Source of the DNA: Dimorphilus gyrociliatus
Lineage: Eukaryota; Animalia; Annelida
NCBI GenBank assembly: GCA_904063045.1
Contig: CAJFCJ010000125.1
Coordinates: forward strand, 1 to 43,416
Direction: 5' to 3'
DNA length: 43,416 nucleotides
Below the pieces are notes generated by a model that was not told the DNA's origin, did no database searches, and worked only from the letters and a program-made list of their open reading frames with translations. Of this stretch, positions 829 through 39,715 are shown one piece after another. Both the position numbers and the translations under genes were made by a program. How positions within the stretch are numbered: the first letter of the stretch is position 1; each line of letters starts with the position of its first letter.

Positions 829-2956
829 TATGGTTTTTAACCTATGTAGGAATCTAACATCAAGAGTTTTGCCTGAACACTATGGACAAGGTCTGGGCTT
901 TGCTGGACTTGGGCCCCAAATAAATTTATAAACTTGCACTTCACAGGGTCTTGGATTATACATTAAATGGCTAAAGATCATTGAGAAAAATGGTACACCA
1001 AGATTTCGAAATAATCACTAAAGAAAAACTTCTTGACATACAAGCACGCATCTCTACTGAACTAATGAGGGAGTTAAATTACATGCCCTCTAGTCATATT
1101 CCAGAAATTAACCATATCACAGACAGGATATATGACATTATAAAGGGCTCTGAAAAAATTAATAGAGCCCAGAAGGGTTTTGAAAATCAAGGCCTAATGA
1201 AAAACTTCCTCAACAATCATCCTAACATTATCATTAAACCAGCTGATAAAGGAAGAAGGATTGTCTTAATGGACAAAGAGGACTATGTCTTTGAAGCCAT
1301 GACACAGCTCTGTGACAGAACAACCTACAAACAGGTCAGCAATAAAATAAGCTCTACCCAATGGACCCGGTTAAATGAAATCTTAATGAATTGGTTACAA
1401 TGAAAATTATTACCAATCTACAGCAACTCTGATGGCTCCACAGAATAGCCCAGGAGATAGAAAGTTTTACCTCCTACCTAAAATTCATAAACACAGCTCC
1501 AATGGAGAGTACCATATAGGATCCCAAGGGGAGACAGTGGTGAGCTATGTAGGCTCTGATCTATATAAATATCTAAATTTGTTGATCACTATCTGGTCAA
1601 AATGGCAAAAAGTACTAGCTATGTTAAAAACACCCAACATTGCATTGGCAAACTATCTATGATACATAATTGGCAAAAGAGGGATCTTCACAGCAGATGT
1701 AGAAGCTCTATACCCAAGCATTAACCCTCAATGGGGCATAAAAGCTGTTAAAGAGTTCATGTTAACCCACTACCATGAAGGTAGACCTGATGAACTAATC
1801 TTGGAATCCTTTGGATTTGTCTCAACAACAATGATTTCACCTTTGGAACCACAGGTTCCTGCAAATAAAGGGCACAGCTATGGGAGCTCCATTTAGTCTG
1901 CATATGCAAACATAGTGTTACACACCTGGGAACATGAATTGGTCACAGATTTTACAGAGGACATTGAGTACTATGGCAGGTACATTGATGATATCATTTT
2001 GGTCACTAAACCAGACAGGGACATCATGGAGTTCAAGACAAGACTAAACAACAGAAATCCAGATATCAAGCTCACTTGGTCCCAGAACCTAAATCAAGTA
2101 CTTTTCTGGACTTGGACCTACATATACTAGGGAATCTCTTTCCTGGGAAACCCATTTTAAGGCTACTGACTCCAGAATACTGCTACACACCAAATCCAAT
2201 CATCCACCACACACATTCAGAGGTATCCTAATGAGCCAGCTAACTAGATATATGAGAAACTGCAAAGATCCCAAAATGGCTATCTCACAGTTCAAAGATC
2301 TCATTAGAATCAATAAAGTCAATGGCTACACCTGGAGAATGGGGAGGGACACCATCAAAAAATTCAACACCAGAGCTGAAGAAAAAAAGGCACTGAGGTA
2401 TAAAGTCAATAAATGTTGTAACACTAGATGTGATACTTGCCTCAGACTGGACTCCAGAGATGAGGTATTTGACCTATACCAGGTCAACTCTTGGAGCTTA
2501 ACCCAAAGCATTAACTGTAACACCAAGGGTTGTGTCTATATCCTACAATGCTCTATGTGTGGGTTAGCATATGTGGGTATGACTACAGATACTATCAAGT
2601 GTAGATGGGGTACCCATAATTTGGGCTTCAAAAACAAGATAGATAGACCACTATATAACCATATGGCAACACATGATATCAAGAAGTTCAAGATCTACAT
2701 AGCTGCTGTAGCTCCTAAGGAACTCACAGAGAGCTCAGTAATAGTTTGGTTAATGAGAAAAGAAACTGAAATCATCAACCATTTGGATACACTGTTCCCA
2801 CATGGTCTTAATAAACATGAAGGTTTTACCACCAGGGAAATGGTACCACTCCTCATACCACAACACAATGGAGCCCAACTAATAGCTGAGAAAGTCAAGA
2901 GAACAATCCACCAGCTAGCCCTAACAGCTCTCACTTCCAAATGTATAAGTCAATAA
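829..2956 (+). pseudogene. PLE reverse transcriptase - GIY-YIG endonuclease polyprotein, multiple frameshifts/stops
   Basis: RT motifs are spread over ORFs 981..1403, 1432..1662, ~1690-1900 and 1915..2130. The GIY-YIG domain with its Zn-finger-like linker is in 2231..2956. Confidence 0.92.
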
Positions 2957-7509: not shown

Positions 7510-7790
7510 TATTACTAAAAAGATTGAGGGAAACCTCAATTGTAATTCAGACCACATGTTTTTCATTGCTGATTGTAAAAAGTGTAATTGGGCTATGGCT
7601 AGCTTCACCATATCTCCACTACATAGAATGTCTGGCTCTTTTGCAAATACCAACACTCTGAATCTATTAGAATGTTGGCCATCCCCATGGTGGCATATTA
7701 AAACAGTCTTGTGGAGAATTTGTAAGTGGTTTTGTTGGAGATACAGTTACAGCTTAGGCTGGGGAATTGCTACTCAAGATAGCAACTCCT
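7510..7790 (+). pseudogene. Remnant of a second PLE GIY-YIG domain
   Basis: GNLNCNSDHMFFIADCKKCN...FTISPLHRM parallels SINCNTKGCVYILQCSMCG...MTTDTIKCRW of the first PLE. A further frame gives IPMVAY*NSLVENL*VVLLE, like the PVA.HF..L.V.ILE segment. Confidence 0.45.
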
Positions 7791-10425: not shown

Positions 10426-13350
10426 CTTAATTGTTCACAGAATTTGCAATTCTTTATATGGTCTTTAATTGTTTTCTTAAGTTGTGGATGCCAGAAAGCT
10501 GTTCCAAAGTATGAATTGTTATGTCTACACCATAGTGTTCAATATTTGATGTGATGTATTTGGTTCAGTAGGTTTGTTAAGTAGTAGTGGAATTACCAGT
10601 AATGGTTGACAACCATTCAGATACCATACTAAATCATCTTGACAAACATATGTTCAATAAAATTTTTGTATTCCTTGAACATTTCAACATCAATATTTGC
10701 TCCTTCCAATTTTCTACAATTTTCATTAGCGTGTCATCCAAAACTTGTTCAGTGTAGAAGTTTATCTCAACAGGTTTATTTTTTAATTTCATGACCTGTA
10801 ATTTTTTGTCATCTGCTTCTTCATCATAACCATCATTATTGTCTAAAATGTCATCCAAACAATCAGCTAAGTCTTCTAAATCTTCTGTATCAATATAAAA
10901 GCATTTAAGCATATCCTTTCTTTCTGCTAATTGTGGAATTGTATTGCCATTTTGTTTTTCTTCATTTAGTCTTTCCTTTAGTAAATTTCGGAAATCAATA
11001 ACTTCATCAGTTTCTCCAATTCTGGATATCCAGTCTGCTCTGTTGGTTCTTCCAGGTATGTAAATTATTTCAAAGTCCATATCCATAAGTACCATAACCC
11101 ATTTAACAGTACTTGAATTTAATTTGTTTTATACAAATGTTTGTACCAAATTTTGGTGATCAGTGTAAAGAAAAAATTTCTTATACTGCAAGTAATGGGA
11201 GAATTTTTGTACTGCCCAATAGACTGCAAAAGCTTCTTTTTGATAAGCTGCATACCTTAGTTGTGTATTGATTAGGAGTTTTGAAGCAAAAGAAATTGGT
11301 TTTCTTATTTTCTTTCCATCTTCTTCCCATTCTTGTTCTAAAACTGCACCAACTGCATAATTGGAGGCATCTGTTGTTAGATAGAATGGTTTACTAAAAT
11401 CAGGTAGTTGAAGTATTGGTGGTTCTGTCATTGATTTCTTTAGTGTCTGATACGCTTTCTCTGCTTCTGTAGTCCATTTTAGTCTTTCAGTCTTCTGATG
11501 TAGTTTTAATAATTCTCTCAATGGTTTTGTAATTTTTGCAAAGTCCTTGATAAATCTTCTATAATAACCACAAAATGCCACAAAACTTAGTAAAGTATTT
11601 GCAAACATTGGTAATTCAGCATCTTTTATCTTTTGAATCTTTTCTGGATCAGTTTCAATACCATTCTGTGTAATTCTATGACCAAGAAATTGTACTGATT
11701 CTTGTAGAAATGCACATTTGCTTAACTTGATTCTGAAGTCCTTTTCTTTGATTTTCCATCAGTTTCTGTAGACTTGTGTAGTGTTCCTCCAATGTTTGGT
11801 AAAAACAATAATATCATCCATATAGTTAATACAGAAATTTTCCAATCCATTTATGACAAAATTTGCCATAAGATATAGGCGAAGTGTGAGGGTGCATTTG
11901 CTAAACCAAGGCATTCGATTAAATTCAAATAGACAATGGTGTTATGAAAGCAGTTTTTTCTTTGTCTTCTTCCTTGATAGGGATGTGGTGAAATGCACTT
12001 GTCAATCCAAGATGGAAAAGTATTTATGTCCTCCTCCAAGTTTGTCAAATAAACTTCTTGGTGGGGATTGGATAACAATTCTTTTTGAATGCTTGTTAAG
12101 TTTTCTGTAATCTACACACTTCTTAATGTTCCTTCTTTCTTTTCACAAAACAATTGGTGAAGCCCATTGGCTTTTGCTTGCTCTAATCAAACCATTTGCT
12201 AATACCATTATTGTTCCTACATTCCTGTTGTTTGTTGGGTGGTAATCTATGGTCTTTGTTTAAAAGGTTTCACATCTTCCAAAATTCAATTGCCATTGGT
12301 GGAACATCTGTGAGCCAATGTCATTTTGATTTGTAGCAATAATGTCTTCATAATTCTTGATGATTTCTTTCAATTCTTCCCTGATTTTGTCAGGATTATT
12401 TTTGGAAACATGTAAATAGTTGTCAATTTCTACTGTAGTTGAATTAATGTGGTGTATATTTTGATTAGACATATGTTCAAACTCAACACTTTCTTCTATC
12501 TCAGGAGTTGCTGGAGTTTTCATTTGTTCTTTTTCAACTTTGATAGTTATCTATCCTTAATTCTATGTATTGTGTTTTCATTTCCATTTCTGTAATTAAT
12601 TCTTCAGATTCAGTTTCAGTTTCTTCAGCAGATGAGTTAACGATAATAACTGAGTCATTGTCTGAATCTGTTGTGTTGCCATTTTCTTCTTCAGATGACT
12701 TTATACCATTAACAATATCCAAATCTGAGTCTGAGTTATGCTCTGGTTCATTACTCATCTCTGTATCATAATTTTCAGAAGAACTCAAAGTTTCATTTGA
12801 GCCATAAGTATTACTTGTATCATATCCAGTATCTGGCTCAGTAATATCCATATCTGAATCCACACTATCTGACACTCAGATGGGTCATCATGTTCATGAG
12901 CATATTGTCCAATCATTCCACAGTTAGTTTGTTAGGTTTCCTTGGTTTCTTTTGTGTTTGATCCTTTGTCTTTTTTGTAGAAAAGTTTTAACAGGTTCTC
13001 CTTTTCTTATAAAGAATGGAGTGAAACTTGTTTAATTGCAAAGTTGATTATTGCTCCAGACTTTCTTAGAAGTCACATCCCAAAATTATTGCCATATCCA
13101 ATTTTTCCATTATAAAGAATTCTTGTTCCATTATTCTTCCAGCAAATTGTATGTTAAGTTTTGCTTTACCTTTAGTTTTCAAAGCATTTCCATCAGCTGA
13201 AGTTATTATTGGTAATGAAGTGGTTTCTTTCTTTACCCATTTTTGTCCAATAATTAATTTCTTTTTCAGTGATAAATGACATGAGTGCTCCGTGTCACAT
13301 AATGCAATCACTTCTCTTCCATTATGATTTTCAACGAAATTGGAAATCAT
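10426..13350 (-). pseudogene. pol: Gypsy pol (protease, RT, RNase H, start of integrase), frameshifted
   Basis: PR ALCDT(G) is broken by a 1-nt frameshift. RT pieces at ~11600-12300; RNase H FYLTTDASNYAVGAVLEQ...YTDHQNL; FEIIYIPGRTNRAD.ISR linker. Confidence 0.9.
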
Positions 13351-13467: not shown

Positions 13468-14523
13468 TTAATCTGTTGAAGTACCTCTCTCATTTCCAGA
13501 TCTTTGGTATTGATGGGTCCTATTTTGAGAAAAAGGTGTAAATTTATGGTTATTATCATTTGCATAACTGTTATTGTTATCAAATCTTTTTTTGAATTGC
13601 TTGAATTCATTTTCATCTTCTCTCCTTGCATTATTAAAGTAAATTTCTGCTCTTTTTGCCAATTTAATATATTGGATTACTGAGCTAATTTTTCCATCTT
13701 TTTCCACATGGTTCACAATTTTTCCTTTTAGACCATTCCTGAATATACTAAGGAGTTGCAGTTCTCTAACTCTCTCAGTAACACATACCATCTCAGTAGG
13801 TTTGAATGGTAGGAATTTCTCTACAAGTTCTTTACTTCTTCTAACAAAACTTTGAACAGTTTCATCATTGAACTGTCTCAATCTATCAATATCTTTTTTA
13901 TAAGCCATAGGATCTGGATTAAATTCTTCATCCAATGCATCCCAAATTTCATTTTCAGTTGCCCTGGAGGGTAAGCTTTCAATTACATCTCTGGCTCTTC
14001 CAGTAGTGTATTTTCTCAACATTCGAATTCTCTTTTCCTCTGTATCCCAAAGGTTTAATTCACAAGCAGTTTGAAAGTTCCTCTTAAAGGCCCAAGTATC
14101 TTTGCTACCAGAAAAAGGTCTTAGCAAAGTAGTATTAGGTTTCTCATTAGCATCAATTAGAAGACTTGCAATTGTCTTTTCCAAAGCATTATCTTGAATG
14201 CCATCATTATTGAATTTTGGTTGAGTAGGATAAGGGTTCTCCATACCTTCAGGAATTATAGCTGCCCCAGTCATCAAATGGTATTTCAAAAAACTATTAC
14301 CATCAACCTTGGCTCCACTACTTTTAATTCTCAACATTAATTCATTTATTTTAGTAAGATACTCATCTATTTCTTTGCCTCTGGTCTTGTCATTTTCAAA
14401 AACCAAAATATCATTCATTGTAGAAGTGTTGTGGGCTGTCGACTGTGCCATATTTGTACTTTGTTGTATTGTAATTGTAGGAAGTCCTAGCTCGTCACTA
14501 TCAAATTCGTCCTCTCCAATCAT
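13468..14523 (-). CDS. gag: Gypsy gag (capsid-like), open 351-aa ORF starting inside the LTR
   Basis: LLRPFSGSKDTWAFKRNFQTACELNLWDTEEKRIRML capsid-like segment; clearly homologous to the ORFs at 28101-29265; no CCHC knuckle seen. Confidence 0.85.
   Translation of the reverse strand: MIGEDEFDSDELGLPTITIQQSTNMAQSTAHNTSTMNDILVFENDKTRGKEIDEYLTKINELMLRIKSSGAKVDGNSFLKYHLMTGAAIIPEGMENPYPTQPKFNNDGIQDNALEKTIASLLIDANEKPNTTLLRPFSGSKDTWAFKRNFQTACELNLWDTEEKRIRMLRKYTTGRARDVIESLPSRATENEIWDALDEEFNPDPMAYKKDIDRLRQFNDETVQSFVRRSKELVEKFLPFKPTEMVCVTERVRELQLLSIFRNGLKGKIVNHVEKDGKISSVIQYIKLAKRAEIYFNNARREDENEFKQFKKRFDNNNSYANDNNHKFTPFSQNRTHQYQRSGNERGTSTD
14436..14450 (-). promoter_or_regulatory. Primer-binding site, tRNA-Ser type
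   Basis: Minus strand TGGCACAGTCGACAG, 4 nt after the LTR end ...AAAGTACA. One mismatch to the PBS at 29249-29264. Confidence 0.75.
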
Positions 14524-15172: not shown

Positions 15173-15408
15173 ATTAAATATGATGTGTATAATAATTTGG
15201 GTTAACATCTAAGTTGTAAAATACTTTTACAACTTGGTTTAAATAGTGTATGTTGTAGTTTTAGGTGTGTAGAGTACTCTATAATACTCTTTCAATATTG
15301 CTTTCCATTGATGAATGAAATGTAACAATTTGGGTGTATTGTGTGAATTTGTGAGCCTGGTTACGAGCTTATGTGTTTAGTACCTACAAACTGCCTAAAT
15401 GTGTACAA
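15173..15408 (-). repeat. Right arm of the inverted repeat (partner 10180-10415)
   Basis: Direct sequence comparison; about 98% identity by eye. Confidence 0.95.
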
Positions 15409-16349
15409 CAACTTTTCTCATTTGTGCTTCAACTTCATTGGCACTTGTTTTTGGATGTGAATGTTGCCCTTTTTCTAAAAAATGTGATCCTTTTTGTAGA
15501 ACAATGGCTGGCCATTTGTACTTTCCTGTTCTTTTACTACAGCACCAAGTTGTTTGTCTGTCAGATTTCTTCTTCACTGCAAAAGTAAAGCCATTTTTTG
15601 TCAATAGATCTTTGCCTCTTCTTGATCCTTCTTTGATAATTTCAAAGCCTTGCTTTTCTGACTGTTTTGTTGATTGACTGGGTGTCACCTCAAAAGAACT
15701 TTCATCAGAAACATTGATAGAATTTGTGAGATTCTTTGGCTCATAATTGTCATCAGATGATTCTTCAGCATCTATTGAACTTTCATGTGAAAAATCAAAT
15801 GAAAGCTCAAGCTAAAGGTTAAATTTCAAATTTTAAATAATAATAAATTAAATGTTATTCTAAAACACTAACCTCTTGATTATCAAATTGTTGTTTATTT
15901 GAACAGGTATCAGTTGAATTTTCAATTTCAGAGGATTCTATATCAGTTATTTCATTTTGTTCAAAGTCCATTGGAGTTCTTATTTGAAGTTCATTACCAT
16001 TTTCCAGTTCATTGCCATTTTCCAGTTCATTACCATTTTCTAGCTTCTTTTCATTTTTCAATTCAGATTGAACTTGTATTTTTTCTACTACAAGCTGATT
16101 GGCATTTTGTACCATAAAGTGCTTGGACATTTGAGCTAACTGAATCTGGCATGTTGTTGTTTTTATGTTTTTGCAAATATTGCAATAGTGTTGGCCTTTA
16201 TTTTAGAAACTGAGTTATATGAATTAGTGGATACAATAATACAGACCTTTGAAGCAGTCCTCATGAAAAACATGTTTACATAAACAACATGTCTTATTCA
16301 TTTGGTTTGAAAAAATCATTTGTTTGCAGTATAAGCATTTGGAAGCCAT
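15395..16349 (-). pseudogene. Mutator-like (MULE) transposase N-terminus: PHD-like finger + acidic linker + FLYWCH, truncated at the inverted repeat
   Basis: Exons 16349-16247, 16195-15873 and 15811-15395 with 51- and 61-nt introns, in frame. CLYC..CCLC..HEDC..CNIC (C4HC3); SRRGKDLLTKNGFTF..WCC..R..WPA.V..GQHSH (FLYWCH, one Cys changed to Trp). No DDE domain follows. Confidence 0.75.
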
Positions 16350-16639
16350 TTGTTGGATAGAAATGTATCAAAATTCCCTTTTAATTTTTTAAATGAAGAA
16401 TATATCTATGCTGATTATGTAGACAAACAAAAAACATGAAAAAATTCAATATTTACCAACAATTTCAACAAAATGTTGTCAAAATCAGTATTATAACATT
16501 TTACTTTTATATAAAATATACAATATAATATTAACAATTTAATTAATCACAAAAAATCAACAATAAATACTAAAGTGACTTACCTCAAATTGAGTGATAT
16601 TTAAAAAGGAAGTAAATTTTACTTTTTTTTTTTAGTTTT

Positions 16640-17075
16640 CTAAAGACTAGCCGAAATAATAATTTTATGTCGGTTTATATGGTGAACTCTTATAGAATGT
16701 CTTAGTGAACCTTCACTGCTCCTAATGGTTAATGTTGACTCAGTCAATGCATTGAAAGCTGAACTCAGACCAATAAAGTAAAGGCCAGTGCTGAGTACAT
16801 TCAATTTATCTCCAATCTTCTGAAATCCTCTCAAAGCCATAGTTATGGGTAATGGAACAACACTTTCTATTTCCCACTCTTCGTCACGTGCTCCATAAAA
16901 ATAATGATTAGTGTTGTAGCGAAAGCCAGCCCATGCCGTTTCTCTATTGATACCACCAACCAAACCGGATGTAGAAAAGACTTGTTTAACATAAGGTCTA
17001 TTTAGTGAAGTAAGGAGGTGAAGACTACAACACAAGTCAGATATAGATAGATTATCAATTGATAAGAAGATTATT
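16640..17075 (-). pseudogene. Decayed paralog of the adjacent multi-C1q gene, inverted
   Basis: LNRPYVKQVFST..WAGFRY..YFYGARDEEW..GLYF aligns with LNKPYIQQAFST..WAGFHY..YFFGARDEEW..GLYF of 17471..18589. The upstream part is full of stops and the 3' part is missing. Confidence 0.8.
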
Positions 17076-17470: not shown

Positions 17471-18718
17471 ATGAAAATACTTTATTCTTGTATTTTTGTG
17501 GTCTTTTGTTGTTCAACTGCTTCTAGCAATGAAAATATGAATGACCTTGTTCAAGAAAAAGATGTTGTAAAATCGAATAATCCAGCGTTTGTGGTATCAC
17601 TTAGCAACACTGGAAATGTTGGAGAGGGAAGAATGAATTGGGAAAAAGTGTACTTCAACTCTCAACAATTATTCAATCCAGCTGATAATAGTCTTCGTAT
17701 AGCAAAATCTGGAATGTACTTTTTAGCAATGACAGCAACAGTTGTCAAGAATTCAAGGGTGTCTATGCAGCTAAATGGAACTGGTAGAGAGTTGGGAATG
17801 ACTAGACAAAAGTCAGTTAATAACCTCAATACCATTACAAGAGACAGTCTCTTTTTTCAAACACCATTGAACAAGCCATACATCCAACAAGCATTTAGCA
17901 CTGCAAACCTCACTGGAGATAACAATACGTTATGGGCTGGTTTTCATTACGATTCCAGTTTGTATTTCTTTGGTGCTCGCGATGAAGAATGGATTGAAAA
18001 ATCATCATCAATTCCCCTATCCATTATCATGGCTATGAGAGGTTTTCAATTGGAAAATAACAACTTGAAAGTTATTGAATCCGGTTTATACTTTGTTAGC
18101 TTTTCTTCTGGTTTTCTTGCAGCTGATGACACAATTGTCAGCTTCCATATAAATAATGGTAAAGAACAGTATAAAAGCATTAATACGTTCTACATGGGCC
18201 ACCACACAACTCACCATACGAAAAGTTTTCTAACTTTCCTACAAGCTGGAGACAGCGTTGGCTTGACCCTAACTGATGGAACATCCTATGCCGATGCTGA
18301 TTTGCAAATGTATTTAACTATATTCAAGTTGGACAGCGAAAAACCTTATTTTTGCGGATCTAATAATTTCGATATTGATAAATCAGAATTTGTCAGATTT
18401 CGCAATATAAAACTTGATTCTCACAATTCATGGAATAATGTTGAAGGAAAATATGTCGTTCCGCAATCAGGGACCTATTACGTAACGGCTAACTTTCCGT
18501 TCGAAAGTAATAAGAATGAACTGGATATTGAAATAAGAGTTAATGGAGATTTATTGTCAACTTTCTACGCTGGTCAATGGAAGGACTAGGATCCATATTT
18601 AACATCAACTTCAATGTTATTATCCTTGTCTAGAAATGACTTTCTACAAATAAAAATACAGGGAAGTGATGCTAAAGCTAAAAATCAAGGTGTATTGTCA
18701 ATAGTTTACATTGATTAA
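17471..18718 (+). CDS. Secreted protein with three tandem C1q-like domains; in-frame TAG at 18587-18589 within domain 3
   Basis: Signal peptide; three repeats of the F/Y..(P)xSGxY(F/Y) strand pattern. The frame continues after TAG for 42 codons (TSTSMLLSLSRNDFLQIKI...LSIVYID) that complete the C1q fold. Confidence 0.8.
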
Positions 18719-19738: not shown

Positions 19739-21363
19739 ACAGATGATTTTGTATAGCCAAGAATAAGAGGATTAATTGTTGAATTTGACAGAAGAGATGC
19801 TGTAAGCATAGAGATAGAAAACCTATAAAATGATGATACTGCAATAATTAAAAAAAACTGGTTGTGTTGGGGAAAGACAATTGCGTGAGTTTTCATGTTT
19901 ATCAGAAAGATAGAAGAAGAATAGAATGTACTTATGGAATATCTAACATTGGTAAAAGTCAATGCAGTTAAACTAAAATTCTTTAATTTCTGAATGTAGA
20001 TAAAATTCAAGATGGCTGATTTTGTCAAAAGTTCTTTTTTTTTATGGACAAAAAAACTTGTAATTTTCTTTTTCTTTACACAATACAAAATCTGTATCAT
20101 AGGCAAAAAAATTCAGGATTATGCTCTTCAATATTTTCTCTGTATATTTAAAATTTTGAATAATTAGCCAAAGCTTCTATTGTCAGATAGAGAATCTTAC
20201 CAATTAAAGTTACACAATTAGTAGTTTTTGAGTCAACTAGTTCAAACTGTTGAAATATGCATTTCAGTTTGTTAATAGCATATTGTAATTTCACTCCAGA
20301 AGCTTCAACATCACCAAGTAAAATTGTCTTTAAAGGTGGATTGTATGATTTTACAGAGAAAATTCCACTAAAGTAAATCTAAGTGTGGGGGGTATTGTAT
20401 AACATCATGCATTTATATTTATAATAGATTGGAAAGTTCTATCTGAATGTGATAGAATGAACTGCAATGAGTCAAAAAGAATCTTATTATATTCATCAAA
20501 GGACAAAGAAATTTGCAAAGATTGGAAGATACTTTCAAAAGTTCAAAAACACCTGCATATTAAATGCAATTTTACTGAGAACAATTCTCTTCAAAGGTGT
20601 ATATAGAAAAAAAATCCCCTAACCATGTTATAACTTGTAAACACAATAGTTTGGTCAATGAAGACAATTTGTGTGTATAACAATAAAGTATGTCAATTTT
20701 TAAAATATGTTATAAATGCATTTGACTGTTTGAAAGAATTTCTGTCTGAACCAATAAATATTCTTTGAACAAAATACTCAACTCAATATTTCGTGTACTA
20801 ATTATTTACTCATTGATATACTCGAATTTCATCAATAATTACTCTTGCAAAAAGGGGACGACTTTTCCCAGGGATGAGTTTTTCCACTCCCTGACTAGTC
20901 GCATCTTCAATTAATTTCAAACATCTGTATTTAAAATCATATAATTTTGACATTTTTTGAATGAATGGAATGATGACATTGTTTTGATTGCCAAAAAGAT
21001 AGAAATCTAATGCATAAATTCATAGGTGGAAACAATTCAAAAGTGATTATGACACCAAATCACAGACACCTAGCCAACTGGGAGAACATTTCCTGAAAAT
21101 ATATTAAAGAATTTAAATGACAGTGAAAAATGGTAAGTAAATATTAATTAATGTAAATATTGTTTTTTTTCCATTTATGCCGTGTTTTAGTAACACCCAT
21201 TTGTAAAAAAATTCTGATTTAATCACAACAAAAGAATATATGAGTTTTAATTAAATAAAATAAATAAATATATTTTTTTAAAATTATATCAAATCATAAA
21301 ACAAAAAAAAAATCTTTAGAAAACCAAATTTACAAAGGAAAATAAATATCATACACTTTCAAA

Positions 21364-23670
21364 ATGGCGACCAGAAGATATAACCTACAAACATTGGAAT
21401 GTGCAATCTGTTCAGAAGTTATTAAAGAAACTACTGGAAATTTACTTCCTTGTCAACATATATTTTGTAATAAATGTCTGCAAGAACTGCAAGTTGAAAA
21501 TGATGAATTTAATTGTTCAAAATGTCAACAAAACAATGACAAAATATCAAAACACCAAATTGAACAATTAGAAATATCTTTTACTCAGAAATCTCCAAAT
21601 GATTCAGCTAGTCCTCCCTCCAAGGAAATACTTACTCATAATCTAATGTTGAAAATTTGTGAAGGAATTAAAATGTCATCAAATAGTTTAAAGAAACTTG
21701 ATTTTCTCAATTGTAATTTAAATGAAAAACAAGGTATAGAGATTGGAAATATGTTAAAATACTGCTCACGAATACAGTCAATAAATCTATATAGAAATGA
21801 AGGGATTGGTATTGGAATATCAAATATTTGTGAAGGACTTCAAATGTCATCAAATAGTTTACAGACCTTGAAATTTAGCTTGTGTGAATTAGATGAAAAG
21901 CAAGGTAGCGATATTGGTAATTTATTGAATCATTGTTCTGGGATAGTAACAATCTACTTATCAGGGAATAGTTTGATTGGCAAAGGAATATTGAACATTT
22001 GTGAAGGACTTCAAAAATCATCAAATAATCTGAAGACTCTTCATATTAATAGTTGTAAATTAGATGAAGAACAGAGTAGAGAGATTGGAAATTTGTTAAA
22101 ACATTGCTCAATAATTGAATCAATAAATTTATCAGGGAATATTCAAATGGGTAATGGGATAATAAATATTTGTGAAGGTCTTAAAAAGTCATCAAATACT
22201 TTAAAGTGTCTTAAGTTAATTCACTGTAATTTAGATGCAAAACAAGGTGAAGAAATTGGAAATTTACTAAATCAATGCTCTTGTATACAAACTATAAATC
22301 TATCAAAAAATTTAATGTTGAATAATGGAATATTAAAAATTGCTGCGGGACTTCAAATGTCATCTCATAGTTTAACAACACTGGATTTAAGTTGGTCTGA
22401 ATTAGATAAAACTCATTGTAAAGAGATTGGAAATTTATTAAGTCAATGCCCTAGAATAGAAACTATCAATCTTTTACGAAATACGAGGATACTTGATGGA
22501 ATATCAAATATTTGTAAAGGACTTCAAGTGTCGTCAAATAATTTAAAGACACTGAAATTAGGATTGGAATATTTAAATGAAGAAAATATAAATGAGATTG
22601 GAAATTTGCTTAATCATTGCTCAAATTTAGAAACAATATGTCTATCAGGAAAAAGATCAATGGATAATGGAATGTTAAGCATCTATGAAGGACTTGAAAA
22701 GTCATCAAATACTTTAAAAATTATTGAATTAACTGCAAGTAATTTTTATGAAAATGATTGGATAGGGATTGGAAATTTGCTTAAACATTGTTCCAGACTG
22801 GAAAAAATAAGTCAATTTCCAAGTGAAGAGATAGGCAATGGAATTTTTAATTTTTGTGAAGGATTTCAAATGTCATCAAACACTTTAACAAATCTTGACC
22901 TAAATTATTGTAATTTAAATGAAGAACATAGTAGAGAAATTGGAAATGCTTTAAAGCATTGCTGCAAAATTGAGATTATAAATCTATCTATGAATGAAAA
23001 TATGGGTAATGGAATATTTAATATTTGCGAAGGACTTCAAACGTCATCAGCTAGTTTAAAATCTTTAGAATTTAGATGGTGCAATTTAGATGAAATACAG
23101 AGTAGAGAGATTGGAAATTTGTTAAAATATTGCTTTAGAATTGAATCAATAATGCTCTCTGGCAATGAGAAAATGGGTAAAGGAATATGGAATATTTGTA
23201 AAGGACTACAAGCATCATCAAATACTTTGATATATTTTGAATTTGGTTGGTGTAATTTAGATGAAACACAATGTAAATATATTGGAAATATGTTAAATTA
23301 TTGCTCAAGAATAGAAACAATAAAACTATCTATGAATGAACAAATGGGTAATGGAATATTAGATATTTTTGGGGGACTTCAAATGTCATCAAGCACTTTG
23401 AAAATTCTGGAGTTAAGTAGATGTAATATACTTGAAAAACACTGTAAAAACTTTGGTAATTTGCTGAAACATTGTTCAAGAATTAAAACTACAACTCTAT
23501 CCTGGAATGACAAGATGGGTAATGGAATATTGGATATTTGCCAAGGGCTTAAACAATCACCAAATACTTTGAAAGGTTTTTGTTTAGTATCTTGTAATTT
23601 AGGAAGAGAAATTGAGTTAAAGATTAGAAATGAACTAAAAAATTGTTCCAAATTAGAATTTATCTTGTGA
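21364..23670 (+). CDS. Intronless RING (C3HC4) + ribonuclease-inhibitor-like LRR protein, 768 aa, about 12 x 56-aa units
   Basis: CAIC..LPCQHIFCNKC..CSKC RING. Twelve copies of ICEGLQxSSNxLxxL alternate with EIGNLLKHCSxIExINL (28+28 aa, 168-bp period). No NACHT/P-loop. Confidence 0.92.
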   Translation: MATRRYNLQTLECAICSEVIKETTGNLLPCQHIFCNKCLQELQVENDEFNCSKCQQNNDKISKHQIEQLEISFTQKSPNDSASPPSKEILTHNLMLKICEGIKMSSNSLKKLDFLNCNLNEKQGIEIGNMLKYCSRIQSINLYRNEGIGIGISNICEGLQMSSNSLQTLKFSLCELDEKQGSDIGNLLNHCSGIVTIYLSGNSLIGKGILNICEGLQKSSNNLKTLHINSCKLDEEQSREIGNLLKHCSIIESINLSGNIQMGNGIINICEGLKKSSNTLKCLKLIHCNLDAKQGEEIGNLLNQCSCIQTINLSKNLMLNNGILKIAAGLQMSSHSLTTLDLSWSELDKTHCKEIGNLLSQCPRIETINLLRNTRILDGISNICKGLQVSSNNLKTLKLGLEYLNEENINEIGNLLNHCSNLETICLSGKRSMDNGMLSIYEGLEKSSNTLKIIELTASNFYENDWIGIGNLLKHCSRLEKISQFPSEEIGNGIFNFCEGFQMSSNTLTNLDLNYCNLNEEHSREIGNALKHCCKIEIINLSMNENMGNGIFNICEGLQTSSASLKSLEFRWCNLDEIQSREIGNLLKYCFRIESIMLSGNEKMGKGIWNICKGLQASSNTLIYFEFGWCNLDETQCKYIGNMLNYCSRIETIKLSMNEQMGNGILDIFGGLQMSSSTLKILELSRCNILEKHCKNFGNLLKHCSRIKTTTLSWNDKMGNGILDICQGLKQSPNTLKGFCLVSCNLGREIELKIRNELKNCSKLEFIL

Positions 23671-24660
23671 ATTCGTAAATGAGTAACACATAATCTCTTT
23701 GATGTCTTCAACAATGTATTTAAAAGCTATGTATATGTCTAAAATATAATTGGTAGTAGCGCCATCTATTGTAAACCTAACCCTTTTTAAAATTCATTGA
23801 TTAAAAAGTTTGATTAATTGTCAATTGTGCAAATGTTGAATTGAATGAAATTTAAGCCAAACTGGATTAAAATTGTTGATAATTATCATTTCCGTTGAGT
23901 ATCGATTAGATATAAATTAATGATTTGTTTTAATACCAAATTTTCTTTGTTGTATATTTTCAATAGTTTTAGTGACATCAATTAGATGTTTAAATGACAA
24001 AAATTCCTAAAAAAAATTATTTGAAAATTGATTAGAAAGATGTTTTACATTTCCTTTTTGTAGAACATTTTTCATTTTCTATAGTTTCAATTCTATATTT
24101 AGAATATTTTATTGAAATAGAAATAAAAGAGAGAAAGTATTAAAAAGGTAAAAGAAAACAAAGAATTAGAAGATAAATGGTATCATTCATTAGATGACCA
24201 ATCTTTCAAAGGGAAATATATTGCCATATATCTTTATCCATATAGAAATCCAGAAATTTTACAAGGATAAACTTTGGCTGTACCTAACCCTTTTCCATTA
24301 TCCTAAATCAAAGATTGAAAAGGGTCATACACAAATATTTGAAAATTGTTCCATTTCTCCATTTCCTAGTAAGTTTATTGATTTTAGATATTTGCTATGG
24401 ACTCTTTCAATCATCAAAATATTTAAGAGATATCAATATATTTCAGACATTGTGATATTAATCGAAAAATGTGTACAAATATGTTTCAATATCATTAAAT
24501 TGCTGAAAAAATACTAAAACTTTAAATGATTGTTTAATAGTAAATTTTATAAAAGTTGATCTGATCATGTTGCCACAAATTAAAGATAATTTGCCAACAG
24601 AGGGACACAAAATGTACAGTTTTAGCCAATGATACTAGATCTGTTTTCATCTATTTAAAC

Positions 24661-24810
24661 AATTGCTATTATTTGTATGAATTTTTCAAAAAATTGACTT
24701 TCAACGAAGCTGAAAGATTTTGTCAATTGAAAGGCAAGAAATTAGTAACGATATCTGGTGAAGACGAAGCAATGTTTGTAAAAATTGCTCTTGTATCAAC
24801 ATTCAGATAG
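24661..24810 (+). pseudogene. C-type lectin domain, N-terminal half
   Basis: NCYYLYEFFKKLTFNEAERFCQLKGKKLVTISGEDEAMFV followed by a stop; the rest of the domain was not found. Confidence 0.75.
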
Positions 24811-24986
24811 TTTAATGAAGCCTTCACAATTACTCTAATGCACTTAAAACTTGATTGGTAAATTCCAACTGCTTGTAAAAACTATTTTTGACATTACAAA
24901 AATAAGAAAGTAGACTGATTTTGTTTCTATTTGCAAACTTTAGGCTTATTAAAGGATAAAGGGAAAAATCAAAATTGGACAACTAG

Positions 24987-25356
24987 TGTACTTTGTTGTA
25001 TTGTAATTGTAGAAACCTCAAGCTTGTCACAATCAAATTTGTCCTCGCCAATCATTTGCCAATGTGTCAAAGTACTCAAACAAATAAAACCTTTCAAGTT
25101 CGTCCACAAGTAGTCTCAATAAATGAAATTTCTCAAGAAATTTACCAACAAAACTCGATTATTTCATTTAAAGAATGTTTATTGAGTAAATGAGTTGCTA
25201 GTTCTAAGCAAACACCAAGTTGACTGTTAGAAAACCAAACTGAAACTGACAAACTGGGAAAATACTTCTCCTTATATACATTTGCCAAAGCTTGGGTTCA
25301 GTTGGTCAAAAGTTTACTCGGATGAAATGTAGCATTTTGATATTTCATATGTAACA
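24987..25356 (-). repeat. Gypsy family A LTR: solo LTR, or 3' LTR of the adjacent integrase-env block
   Basis: Colinear with 14455-14815, including identical AACCTTTCAAGTTCGTCCACAAGTAGTCT. Ends AAAGTACA with no PBS; AATAAA and TATA on the minus strand; no TSD found. Confidence 0.85.
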
Positions 25357-32413: not shown

Positions 32414-33901
32414 TCATTATCTCAAAAAATATTAAAGCATAACCTATTGAAACAAATAAATTGAAAAAGGAAATTTCAATCCCCAAAGTGAAATACAAAA
32501 AATTTCTACAAATTTGACACATGTGACTACAATGTCAGGTGATTCGTCAATTAATCTCATGTTTTTATAGATATTTTCTACTTGGTCAATTTTTCATCCT
32601 ACTTAGAATCAAGTTATTTTCTCTTGTAGCAGCTTTAATGGCTCTATTTTTACATATAGAGAAGATAACAACAATGTTGTTCTAACTGATAGATGATTAG
32701 ACTAGATGATTAGTTGGTAGTCTAGTTCTTTTAGAGAAAAGGCACAATAAATAGTCACTTTATAAATGTAAAATATGTAGACAAATTATCAATATGAAGA
32801 TATGTGAATTGAGTGATAACATTTGAAACTGCTTCAATATTATATTTCGCTGAAAAACATGATTTATCTGAGAATGGGGCGATGGGAAAAAGATTTCAAA
32901 AGGTTTGCAAGTCACTCATTTACCCTTCTAAATCAATGAAAATAATAACGATATCTCTTTGCTTGAAGATTCATTTAGAAAACGTGTTTATCTATCTGAC
33001 AAAGATTAAATGGAAACAAGAGGTAATTTGCAAAGGGCCACAAACGTTTTTTAAACGATTTAAAAGAACTTAACATGTCTTCCTTTGACTTGAGAAATGA
33101 ATTGATAATCAAATTTAAAATCACAATATCCATTGCAGTGACTATTAAAGATTAGAAATTTTTTAACCATCTAATTCTAAAACTATTAACATTATTAGTT
33201 TTTAGAGTGAAATACAATATAGATGTCTCTGTAGTCAAATAGTCTGTAAAAATGCAAAATTACCAAGAAAACATTTCCTTGACTTGCTTCAATAGAATAA
33301 ATGTTCGCATTGTTGGTCTTTTAATACATATTTCTTAACAATTTAAAATATTTATACCAGTTTTTGTTGAGCATATTGAAACTAATAAATTATATCTTTG
33401 TCTGTAGTTCAATTGATACGAAGCTATTTTTTTGTAAAAAATTAAATATTACTTTTTGTAAATTTGAAAAAAATTTGCTCTATTTTCTTACATTTTTCAT
33501 ATTTTATTGTTTCTGTACTCATTACGTAATAATTGCAGGCATGAAATTTTTCAATCTAGGAAGAGATTTTTAAATATTTTGCAAATACTTCATTCTGACA
33601 AAAAAATTGAAAGAATGTTTGAGTAGCAACTAATAATTTGCTGTTGGTAGTTGTCCATAGTATTGTACAACTTTGGTTATATTTTACATGGTTGAACTGT
33701 ATTATTTGATGCAACTTATACATGTACATCTTAAAACCTACGCAAGAAAATGCTATAACATTGGACAAACATAAGTCTGATTAGTCAGCTTGAAGGCTCA
33801 TCTTTAATTACCAATAAAGGTTTGGCCAAGTTATAATTTAATTAACTTGCCTAGGGTGTGGCCAAGTTATAATTCAATCAACCTTCCTAAATGTTGAACC
33901 T

Positions 33902-39299: not shown

Positions 39300-39715
39300 T
39301 TTAATCTTTTAGCAGAAAATTTCAATTGAGAATATTAACCTTAATAATAACGTACTTCTGGATAGTGCTAAAGATAGTATTTTAAGGGGACTACTTAAAT
39401 CTTGCGAAATCTTGGAAGATTACTGAATAGCTGTAAGGTGATAGAATACATCAATTTGGAAAGTAATTTAAATATGGGAGGAGGAAAGGTTGGCATTATA
39501 GAGTGTTTGAAAAAATCCTCCAAGACCATAAAACTTTACGTCAAGAGTCCTTGAAAGACTTTTGGTCAATGAAAGAATTTTTAACAAAATTAATGAATGT
39601 GAAAATTAATTACAAAATTTTGGATTATAAATCCACAGTGAAGAGGAACAATGCAGAAAAATTGGAAATCTATTTGAAAATTGCTCTAAAATAGAGTGAA
39701 TAACTTGTAAACAAA
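39300..39715 (+). pseudogene. Decayed paralog of the RING-LRR repeat array
   Basis: IENINLNNN..ILRGLLKS; NLGRLLNSCKVIEYINLESNLNMGGG..IIECLKKSSKTIK; KIGNLFENCSKIE*. These are the same 56-aa repeat framework with deletions and stops. Confidence 0.8.

Follow-up and report, generated by a model that had tools for sequence, protein, structure and literature searches.

The window analysed here is the entire contig C125 (CAJFCJ010000125.1; 43,416 nucleotides, or 43 kb) of the Dimorphilus gyrociliatus genome assembly GCA_904063045.1, which comprises 77.9 Mb in 349 contigs, and all coordinates are positions in this window unless another contig or locus is named. Within it an open reading frame (ORF) encodes a protein with a RING finger at its N-terminus and a solenoid of leucine-rich repeats (LRRs) behind it, an architecture that an earlier note, made from the DNA letters alone, had read as an NLR-like sensor surface wired directly to an E3 ubiquitin ligase. 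The ORF runs uninterrupted through 768 sense codons in a region whose G+C content is only ~27%, and an open frame of that length and composition with a perfect 57-codon periodicity is far beyond chance; an in-frame TAA at 21343-21345 lies 18 nt 5' of the ATG. It is a real D. gyrociliatus gene, intact, without introns and apparently transcribed, and comparison with its relatives suggests that it derives, with loss of the B-box and coiled coil, from a TRIM-like family restricted to this lineage, whose members join a RING to a B-box, a coiled coil and LRRs. That it would be a reduced TRIM-LRR derivative, apparently transcribed and absent from the public protein sets, goes beyond what the earlier note had claimed. 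An exact look-up of the protein in the public sets was negative, the best identity in two libraries was 43%, and the closest database matches of the ORF were unnamed D. gyrociliatus proteins. Matches to the Pfam models ZSWIM1-3_C, DUF3310 and DUF3965 were discarded as repeat-driven noise (0-1 short stretches).

The RING finger was detected at residues 12-56 by two Pfam models that scored above their cut-offs, zf-C3HC4 (25.3 bits; cut-off 21) and zf-RING_UBOX (26.0 bits; cut-off 25.2). A C3HC4 RING follows the pattern C-x2-C-x9-39-C-x1-3-H-x2-3-C-x2-C-x4-48-C-x2-C, and all eight zinc ligands (C13, C16, C30, H32, C35, C38, C51 and C54) are present in the spacing C-x2-C-x13-C-x-H-x2-C-x2-C-x12-C-x2-C, which fits the canonical cross-brace arrangement and bears out the N-terminal C3HC4 RING of the earlier note. 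None of the eight ligands varied when the window RING was aligned with six family heads, and Ile15 occupies the usual E2-contact position (hydrophobic, after the first Cys pair). The sole RING among the PDB matches listed was that of TRIM2, a weak sequence match (E 4e-4), and among the RINGs of its own genome the window RING was matched best by the heads of ORFs that carry a RING, a B-box and LRRs.

The linker that follows retains a post-RING motif, I-x3-Q-I-x2-L-x2-S-F, that is common to the TRIM-LRR paralogs described below. The Pfam model zf-B_box was not found in the protein, and the B-box Cys/His pattern, which the paralogs have at about residues 80-125, is likewise missing from the ORF. 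Between the RING and the first LRR helix there are just 33 residues, in which the structure model places a single 12-residue helix (residues 63-74) and no coiled coil. Because both B-box and coiled coil are missing, the window gene is not a TRIM by definition. Pfam searches of the protein also gave no SAM, F-box or NEL match (F-box and NEL at E up to 1) and no NACHT, and a NACHT profile that found 98 matches in the genome found none on C125, in agreement with the statement of the earlier note that the gene has no NACHT.

Behind the linker, Tandem Repeats Finder reported a tandem repeat at 21655-23575 with a period of 171 bp, 11.2 copies, 66% matches and a score of 722. In the protein this corresponds to a G-N-x-L motif that recurs at an exact spacing of 57 residues ten consecutive times, and to 11 full units (residues 104-730) with zero indels, preceded by a half unit and followed by a partial unit of 38 residues. 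The earlier note had counted 12 units of 56 residues built on a 168-bp repeat; the tandem repeat itself stands, and its size and number are corrected to 57 residues (171 bp) in 11 full and two partial units. Each 57-residue unit is a pair of LRRs of 28 and 29 residues. The Pfam LRR models are nearly blind to these repeats (LRR_1 at E 0.6 at best, LRR_6 unlisted), and it is because of this that public entries of the family are labelled merely 'RING-type domain-containing protein'.

Searches of the PDB were far more informative. The best sequence matches of the LRRs were to ribonuclease inhibitor (RI; 3tsr at E 4e-26, then 1dfj, 4peq and 1z7x), and the next were to the LRRs of NLRP7, NLRP9 and NLRP5 (E 1e-14 to 1e-13), followed by NLRP2, NLRP14, NLRP1 and NLRP3. 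An AlphaFold2 model, built from a 16-sequence family alignment, gave a mean predicted local confidence (pLDDT) of 86 and a predicted template-modelling score (pTM) of 0.74, and contains 23 strand-helix repeats with strands from residue 111 to residue 738; pLDDT is mostly >90 over the solenoid and 55-70 over the RING, and residues 70-87 of the linker are disordered or of low confidence. Searched against the PDB with Foldseek, the model matched both RNH1 and the NLRP LRRs at probability 1.0, the template-modelling (TM) score by target being 0.77-0.80 for RNH1, and the best structural matches include the oocyte NLRP5/2/14 complexes. Because RNH1 and the NLRPs are matched by both sequence and fold, we assign the repeats to the RI/NLR type of alpha/beta LRR. 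The NLR-like surface proposed earlier thus has its counterparts in ribonuclease inhibitor and NLRP5/7/9, and a structure model of the kind that the earlier note had suggested was obtained. Table 1 collects the features of the window.

Table 1. Features of the window, with the RING-LRR gene and its parts first (aa, amino acids or residues; UTR, untranslated region; TRF, Tandem Repeats Finder)
Feature	Positions	Strand	Basis
Intact ORF, 768 aa then stop	21364..23670	+	ORF call
Span covered by run X1, probable unspliced transcript (~20-nt 5' UTR, ~186-nt 3' UTR)	21344..23856	+	Contig coverage
C3HC4 RING, aa 13-54	21400..21525	+	Pfam and family alignment
Linker, aa 55-87	21526..21624	+	Alignment and model
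LRR solenoid of the RI/NLR type with 23 strand-helix repeats, aa 88-768	21625..23667	+	PDB search, model, Foldseek
Eleven complete 171-bp units (57 aa, 28+29), perfect register	21673..23553	+	TRF and period print
Family LRR-unit relic of ~1.3 units, split into two pieces that differ in reading frame	39405..39705	+	
C1q-domain gene, single 372-aa ORF	17471-18589	+	C1q at aa 39-120 (E 3e-12), C1q/TNF-like at aa 187-252
Penelope-like GIY-YIG ORF	2231-2956	+	
LTR-retroelement RNase H	11129-11608	-	
ORF read as gag-like, no Pfam match	13468-14523	-	
FLYWCH zinc-finger fragment, one stop	15383-15721	-	

To describe the variability of the units we assembled 217 distinct full-length, gap-free units from the fetched family loci. 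Entropy was highest at unit positions 8, 10, 12 and 13, which form the type-B strand and the following loop, and at positions 36, 38, 40, 41 and 43; it reached 1.9-2.9 bits at positions 8, 10, 12 and 13 compared with 0-0.9 bits at framework positions, of which S2, L6, C14, L16, G25, C31, N42, I52 and L56 are nearly fixed. The contrast between a conserved framework and variable strand residues drawn in the earlier note holds in this larger set, and the strand octamers that it quoted had been read correctly. Because the strands of the model fall at unit positions 8-10 and 36-38, the variable residues are predicted to be the exposed ones on the concave side.

Given that strand variability by itself is generic to LRRs, we counted synonymous and nonsynonymous differences by the method of Nei and Gojobori (NG86) in 76 disjoint nearest-neighbour pairs of units. 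Over all 76 pairs the ratio of nonsynonymous to synonymous rates (omega) was 0.22 for the framework, 1.20 for the type-B strand (bootstrap confidence interval (CI) 0.99-1.45) and 0.88 for the type-A strand. In the 21 young pairs with at least 90% nucleotide identity the framework gave 0.26, the remaining ('other') positions 1.11 and the type-B strand 3.3 (CI 2.2-5.3), the last from 34 nonsynonymous differences at 206 sites and 37.5 synonymous differences at 688 sites, in a count that leaves out gene conversion and draws on some copies that are pseudogenes. The window gene's own 11 units, which are old (dS ~0.75), gave 0.18 for the framework and 1.37 for the type-B strand from non-independent, near-saturated pairs. 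The overall omega was 0.53. We take these ratios as real but moderate evidence, at the level of the family, that one of the two strand types is under diversifying selection, most strongly soon after a unit has been duplicated; a signal at exposed positions, which the earlier note had offered as a check, is seen there, and is weak within the window's own units.

The suggestion that the gene is transcribed comes from a public run, X1, searched as Logan contigs, which contains 68% of sampled words. Over positions 20000-25000 its exact contigs cover 21344-21681, 22072-23127 and 23098-23856 at a depth of ~9-10, the flanks 20000-21343 and 23857-25000 are essentially uncovered, and high-depth fragments common to paralogs occupy the gap at 21682-22071. 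Such tight bracketing of the ORF is as expected from an unspliced mRNA of ~2.5 kb and unlike a DNA library, and we regard it as suggestive only; the contigs fix neither the ends nor the strand of a transcript. No upstream exon joined to the ORF was found among the X1 contigs over the same 5 kb, and the D. gyrociliatus genome paper reports an absence of trans-splicing (PMC7854359).

The gene belongs to a large family. A search of the genome with the window protein gave 198 scored matches from 967 first-look candidates, spread over dozens of mostly small contigs and usually lying in long uninterrupted frames of 400-2,173 residues. Head types were read from 60 fetched loci, so that the genomic counts are lower bounds: at least ~20 ORFs have a RING at residues 15-50, a B-box at residues 90-125 and the first LRR at residues 270-325, and in the paralogs P0001, P0002, P0004 and P0009 the RING is followed by a B-box-type Cys/His finger, ~170 coiled-coil-like residues and then the same LRR units. 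This TRIM-like arrangement of a RING, a B-box and a coiled coil is the commonest RING form in the family.

An exhaustive search of 1.84 billion protein representatives returned 2,402 relatives, 129 of them at E <1e-30. We scanned the region before the LRRs for motifs in 159 relatives, made up of the best 150 of the 2,402 and the database matches of the window protein, and found a RING with a B-box in 23, a RING with a long linker in four and a Walker-A motif of the NACHT type in 42, while 24 were headless. Further relatives have a head of ~100 residues without a Pfam match that carries a BC-box/Cul2-box-like motif, which suggests that substrate receptors of cullin ligases may have been built on the same LRR module. 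In P0026, P0028, P0030, P0008, P0037, P0025 and P0027 this head begins S/T-L-x2-L-x-L-x2-I/V ... I-P-x2-I-G-x2-I-F.

Every relative that carries a name is from D. gyrociliatus, and the remainder come from Logan assemblies. One of these, a 20-kb contig of SRR23372229 (L061:1-15522), holds a tandem array of four intronless genes of ~1,160 residues with RING, B-box and LRRs, and it matches the D. gyrociliatus genome only at 73-77% over ~100 nt. Because this array is not part of that genome, the TRIM-LRR family is present in at least one other organism.

The same type of LRR is also found behind a NACHT, in the same ORFs, on contigs C147, C95, C36, C305, C297 and C26, and the best genomic match of the window LRRs is an ORF that also holds a NACHT. 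Because NACHT and best LRR matches lie in the same ORFs, these data show that true NLR-type genes use this LRR module too. One such protein, P0017 (CAD5126542.1, DgyrCDS14643; 2396 residues), has a NACHT at residues 178-306 and family LRRs from about residue 1337, and between the two lie a FLYWCH finger (880-937) and a domain of MULE transposase (1051-1147); either the annotation has read through an inserted transposon or the gene model is chimeric.

We found no paper describing a TRIM-LRR, RING-LRR or RBCC-LRR architecture (RBCC denoting a RING plus a B-box plus a coiled coil), and the term 'LRR' occurs zero times in two surveys of TRIM genes, Marin 2012 (PMC3503706) and Sardiello 2008 (PMC2533329). 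The genome paper describes the expanded families of D. gyrociliatus as few and mostly locally duplicated immune genes, and we found nothing in it or its supplements on the present family beyond 'expanded immune families' (PMC7854359).

The RING and post-RING motif of the window gene align with those of the RBCC paralogs, and its RING is homologous to theirs. The LRRs of the window protein start at about residue 88 compared with residues 280-320 in the TRIM-LRR paralogs, the B-box and the coiled-coil region of ~170 residues being what is missing. In a poorly resolved RING tree the window RING stood among those of the TRIM-LRR proteins as sister to a short-head copy on contig C65 (support 99/91); its 68 columns are too few to tell a single loss of B-box and coiled coil from repeated losses.

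The C65 copy (locus L034, minus strand) is also the nearest relative overall, with units of up to 86% nucleotide identity and ~75% for the gene as a whole. It is frameshifted and truncated and, as read from the translated units, has no counterparts of window units 6-9, a difference that appears to be an in-register change of repeat number; the repeat-number variation anticipated earlier thus takes the form of gain or loss of whole units. As for the earlier description of the family as expanding, its large size is confirmed by the 198 matches, and an expansion of the window gene itself is not seen, its nearest paralog being this ~75% identical and broken copy. Locus L034 (C65:109937-113110) contains a head-to-head pair with starts within ~500 bp of one another: the minus strand carries the broken short-head RING-LRR gene, the plus strand a full RING-B-box-coiled-coil-LRR gene.

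Further short heads with other junctions occur on C36 (L012, 570 residues, intact) and C136 (L059), so that the junction points differ between short-head copies, and two more, on C36 (L007:952-2829, at ~40 kb of the contig) and C105, have lost zinc ligands. In these last two the RING head seems to be in decay, on the way to an LRR gene with no head. Their degenerate RINGs read C-Q-H-T-C-C-F-Q-S and C-Q-H-T-Y-F-S-Q-S, respectively, and the C105 copy has its head at 16740-16940 (-) and its LRRs at 15550-16773 (-) of that contig, with a frameshift between them. Because the short-head copies differ in their junctions and some are without zinc ligands, we conclude that the family remodels and loses its heads, and that the window gene is the intact representative of one such remodelling.

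What might such a protein do? Variable domains are joined to a RING in TRIM5, TRIM21 and finTRIM, and F-box-LRR and BC-box-LRR proteins serve as receptors of cullin ligases. LRSAM1 is an E3 ligase that combines LRRs with a RING and recognises bacteria, including in an oyster (PMC8567218, PMC11863841). By analogy with these proteins, we infer that the window protein has E3 activity, binds a ligand with its concave face and plays a role in immunity, and think it rather probable that the window gene encodes a minimal RING-LRR ligase of the recognise-and-ubiquitinate kind, derived from the TRIM-like family and probably immune. A protein or other ligand would be bound by the concave face of the LRRs, where each repeat presents different exposed strand residues, the RING would recruit a ubiquitin-charged E2, and the bound target, or the receptor itself, would be ubiquitinated. 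The protein would be cytosolic, and intracellular immune recognition is its most likely role because of the TRIM5/finTRIM, LRSAM1 and F-box-LRR analogies and because the LRR module serves NACHT genes in this genome.

More tentatively, the gene may be one element of a modular system of intracellular recognition in Dimorphilus and at least one relative, in which a fast-diversifying cassette of NLR-type LRRs is set on a NACHT, a TRIM RBCC, a bare RING, a BC-box-like cullin adaptor or no head at all; the window gene would then be a minimal immune receptor, switchless and scaffold-free, that binds and ubiquitinates.

Several observations weigh against reading the window gene as an active immune ligase. 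Gln55 follows the last RING Cys at the linchpin position, where Arg, Lys or Asn is usual (the paralogs have K, R or I), and Ser52 replaces the Pro before that Cys, as in some paralogs. The protein is without B-box and coiled coil, the oligomerisation scaffold of TRIM ligases. For the RING, dN/dS relative to the nearest paralog, a broken copy, is 0.79 over 45 codons, which does not demonstrate purifying selection, and the C36 and C105 copies indicate that RING heads do decay in this family. Within the solenoid, units 6-7 carry degenerate motifs and have lower pLDDT. Exposed strand residues vary in all LRR proteins, and the signal of selection is family-wide, mostly from pairs of units within genes and obtained by a simple NG86 count. 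Run X1, finally, is not on record as RNA and was taken as a transcriptome from its coverage pattern alone.

The first of these points raise the alternative of a non-catalytic regulator or decoy, whose LRRs bind and whose RING is inactive or serves only for docking, so that it would act as an RI-type binder or compete, in dominant-negative fashion, with TRIM-LRR or NLR paralogs. The residues at the linchpin and before the last Cys and the lack of any coiled coil or B-box for RING dimerisation would suit such a role, and the many headless, LRR-only paralogs, together with the short heads with degenerate RINGs, imply that the LRRs work or persist without a ligase head. The retention of all eight zinc ligands and of Ile15 argues against it, however, and the canonical linchpin is absent from many active RINGs; we consider this alternative unlikely.

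A little less likely again is that the gene encodes the same ligase with another biology, serving not in the defence against pathogens but in conflicts of the germline, of reproduction or of endogenous protein turnover. Mammals offer precedents in two RI-type-LRR families, PRAME and the maternal NLRPs, and reproductive families, too, typically show fast turnover and diversifying selection. The oocyte NLRP5/2/14 complexes stand among the top structural matches, and faint precomputed PRAME_C matches occur on paralogs. Set against this, the LRR module is common to the ~98 genomic NACHT matches, the expanded local families of this genome are assigned to immunity (PMC7854359), and, as a weak point, the C1q-domain gene lies close upstream.

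It is also improbable, more so than either of the foregoing, that the gene has no function and, as a copy recently stranded in a family that evolves by birth and death, is turning into a pseudogene. In favour of this, the nearest paralog is frameshifted, truncated and short of four units, a 300-bp relic lies in the same window, the neighbourhood is transposon-rich, the overall omega of 0.53 is high, and the protein is missing from public sets. Nevertheless, 768 codons remain open at 27% GC, the framework omega within the gene's own units is 0.18, almost all of the solenoid is modelled with confidence, and the contig coverage fits a transcript.

Finally, a mis-read NLR with its NACHT exon upstream, which the NLR-type LRRs and their best match in a NACHT-bearing ORF had made conceivable, is close to refuted: a stop closes the frame 18 nt upstream of the ATG, the RING stands at the extreme N-terminus as in the paralogs, the exact contig begins at 21344 with nothing joined upstream, and no NACHT occurs on C125, where the sole upstream match to an NLR model (15383-15721, -; to P0017) proved to be a FLYWCH transposon fragment on the other strand.

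The recognise-and-ubiquitinate ligase that we favour can be placed among known systems. In the usual description of animal cytosolic immunity, NLRs sense by LRRs and signal by NACHT, whereas TRIMs sense by SPRY-type domains and ubiquitinate by their RING; the present family crosses the two toolkits by setting an NLR-type LRR surface on a ubiquitin-ligase head, and the window gene is its simplest form. With TRIM/RBCC proteins such as TRIM5alpha, TRIM21 and finTRIM it shares a TRIM-type N-terminal RING, a full RBCC in its paralogs, a multigene family and a diversifying recognition domain, but that domain is an RI/NLR-type LRR and not PRY-SPRY, NHL or another listed domain, and the window copy lacks the B-box and coiled coil. 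The Dimorphilus TRIM-LRR proteins (public entries include CAD5118051.1 and CAD5126625.1, 'RING-type domain-containing protein') have a homologous RING, post-RING motif and LRR units and are likewise intronless and located on small, repeat-rich contigs, although the window protein is at most ~43% identical to any public protein.

The likeness to NLRs and RNH1 lies in the LRR class, with alternating repeats of 28 and 29 residues in an alpha/beta horseshoe. RNH1 has 15-16 repeats compared with 23 here, and, unlike an NLR, the window protein has no NACHT/STAND ATPase switch, so that its output would be ubiquitination and not nucleotide-driven oligomerisation. In FBXL proteins, the BC-box LRR proteins PRAME and LRR-1, and bacterial IpaH/NEL enzymes, LRRs also form the substrate-recognition arm of a ubiquitin ligase, and some paralogs of the window gene have the BC-box/Cul2-box-like head of ~100 residues; the ligase module of the window protein differs in being a RING in cis, not a cullin adaptor box or a NEL cysteine ligase. 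LRSAM1 likewise has LRRs and a RING in one polypeptide and couples recognition to ubiquitination (PMC8567218, PMC11863841), but its LRRs are N-terminal and of another class, its RING is C-terminal where that of the window protein is N-terminal, and it has SAM and coiled-coil regions; it is a conserved single-copy gene and not an expanded family, and homology is limited to the domain classes. If active, the window protein would offer a compact, single-exon and tractable model in which LRR specificity is coupled directly to ubiquitination. It is also a natural case of domain shuffling between classes of immune receptor in a highly compacted genome.

The gene lies among mobile elements. The C1q-domain gene is 3 kb upstream, and retroelement remains lie on the other side of the RING-LRR gene. 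The surroundings are transposon-rich rather than demonstrably intron-rich; the 'intron-rich neighbourhood' of the earlier note was not confirmed within ~10 kb, where we found mostly transposon debris and the single-ORF C1q gene. The 'decayed paralog 16 kb away' corresponds to the relic listed in Table 1, of only ~300 bp and ~1.3 units, and a search of the window with 12 family proteins gave no family remnant larger than this. Three shorter matches were noted, all on the plus strand: 7646-7702 is 95% identical over 19 residues to the C-terminus of P0017, 19456-19527 is 71% identical over 24 residues to P0017 residues 1230-1253, and 32852-32962 is a weak LRR-like match (E 7e-4). All three may be dispersed remains, either of members of the family or of the transposon that P0017 contains.

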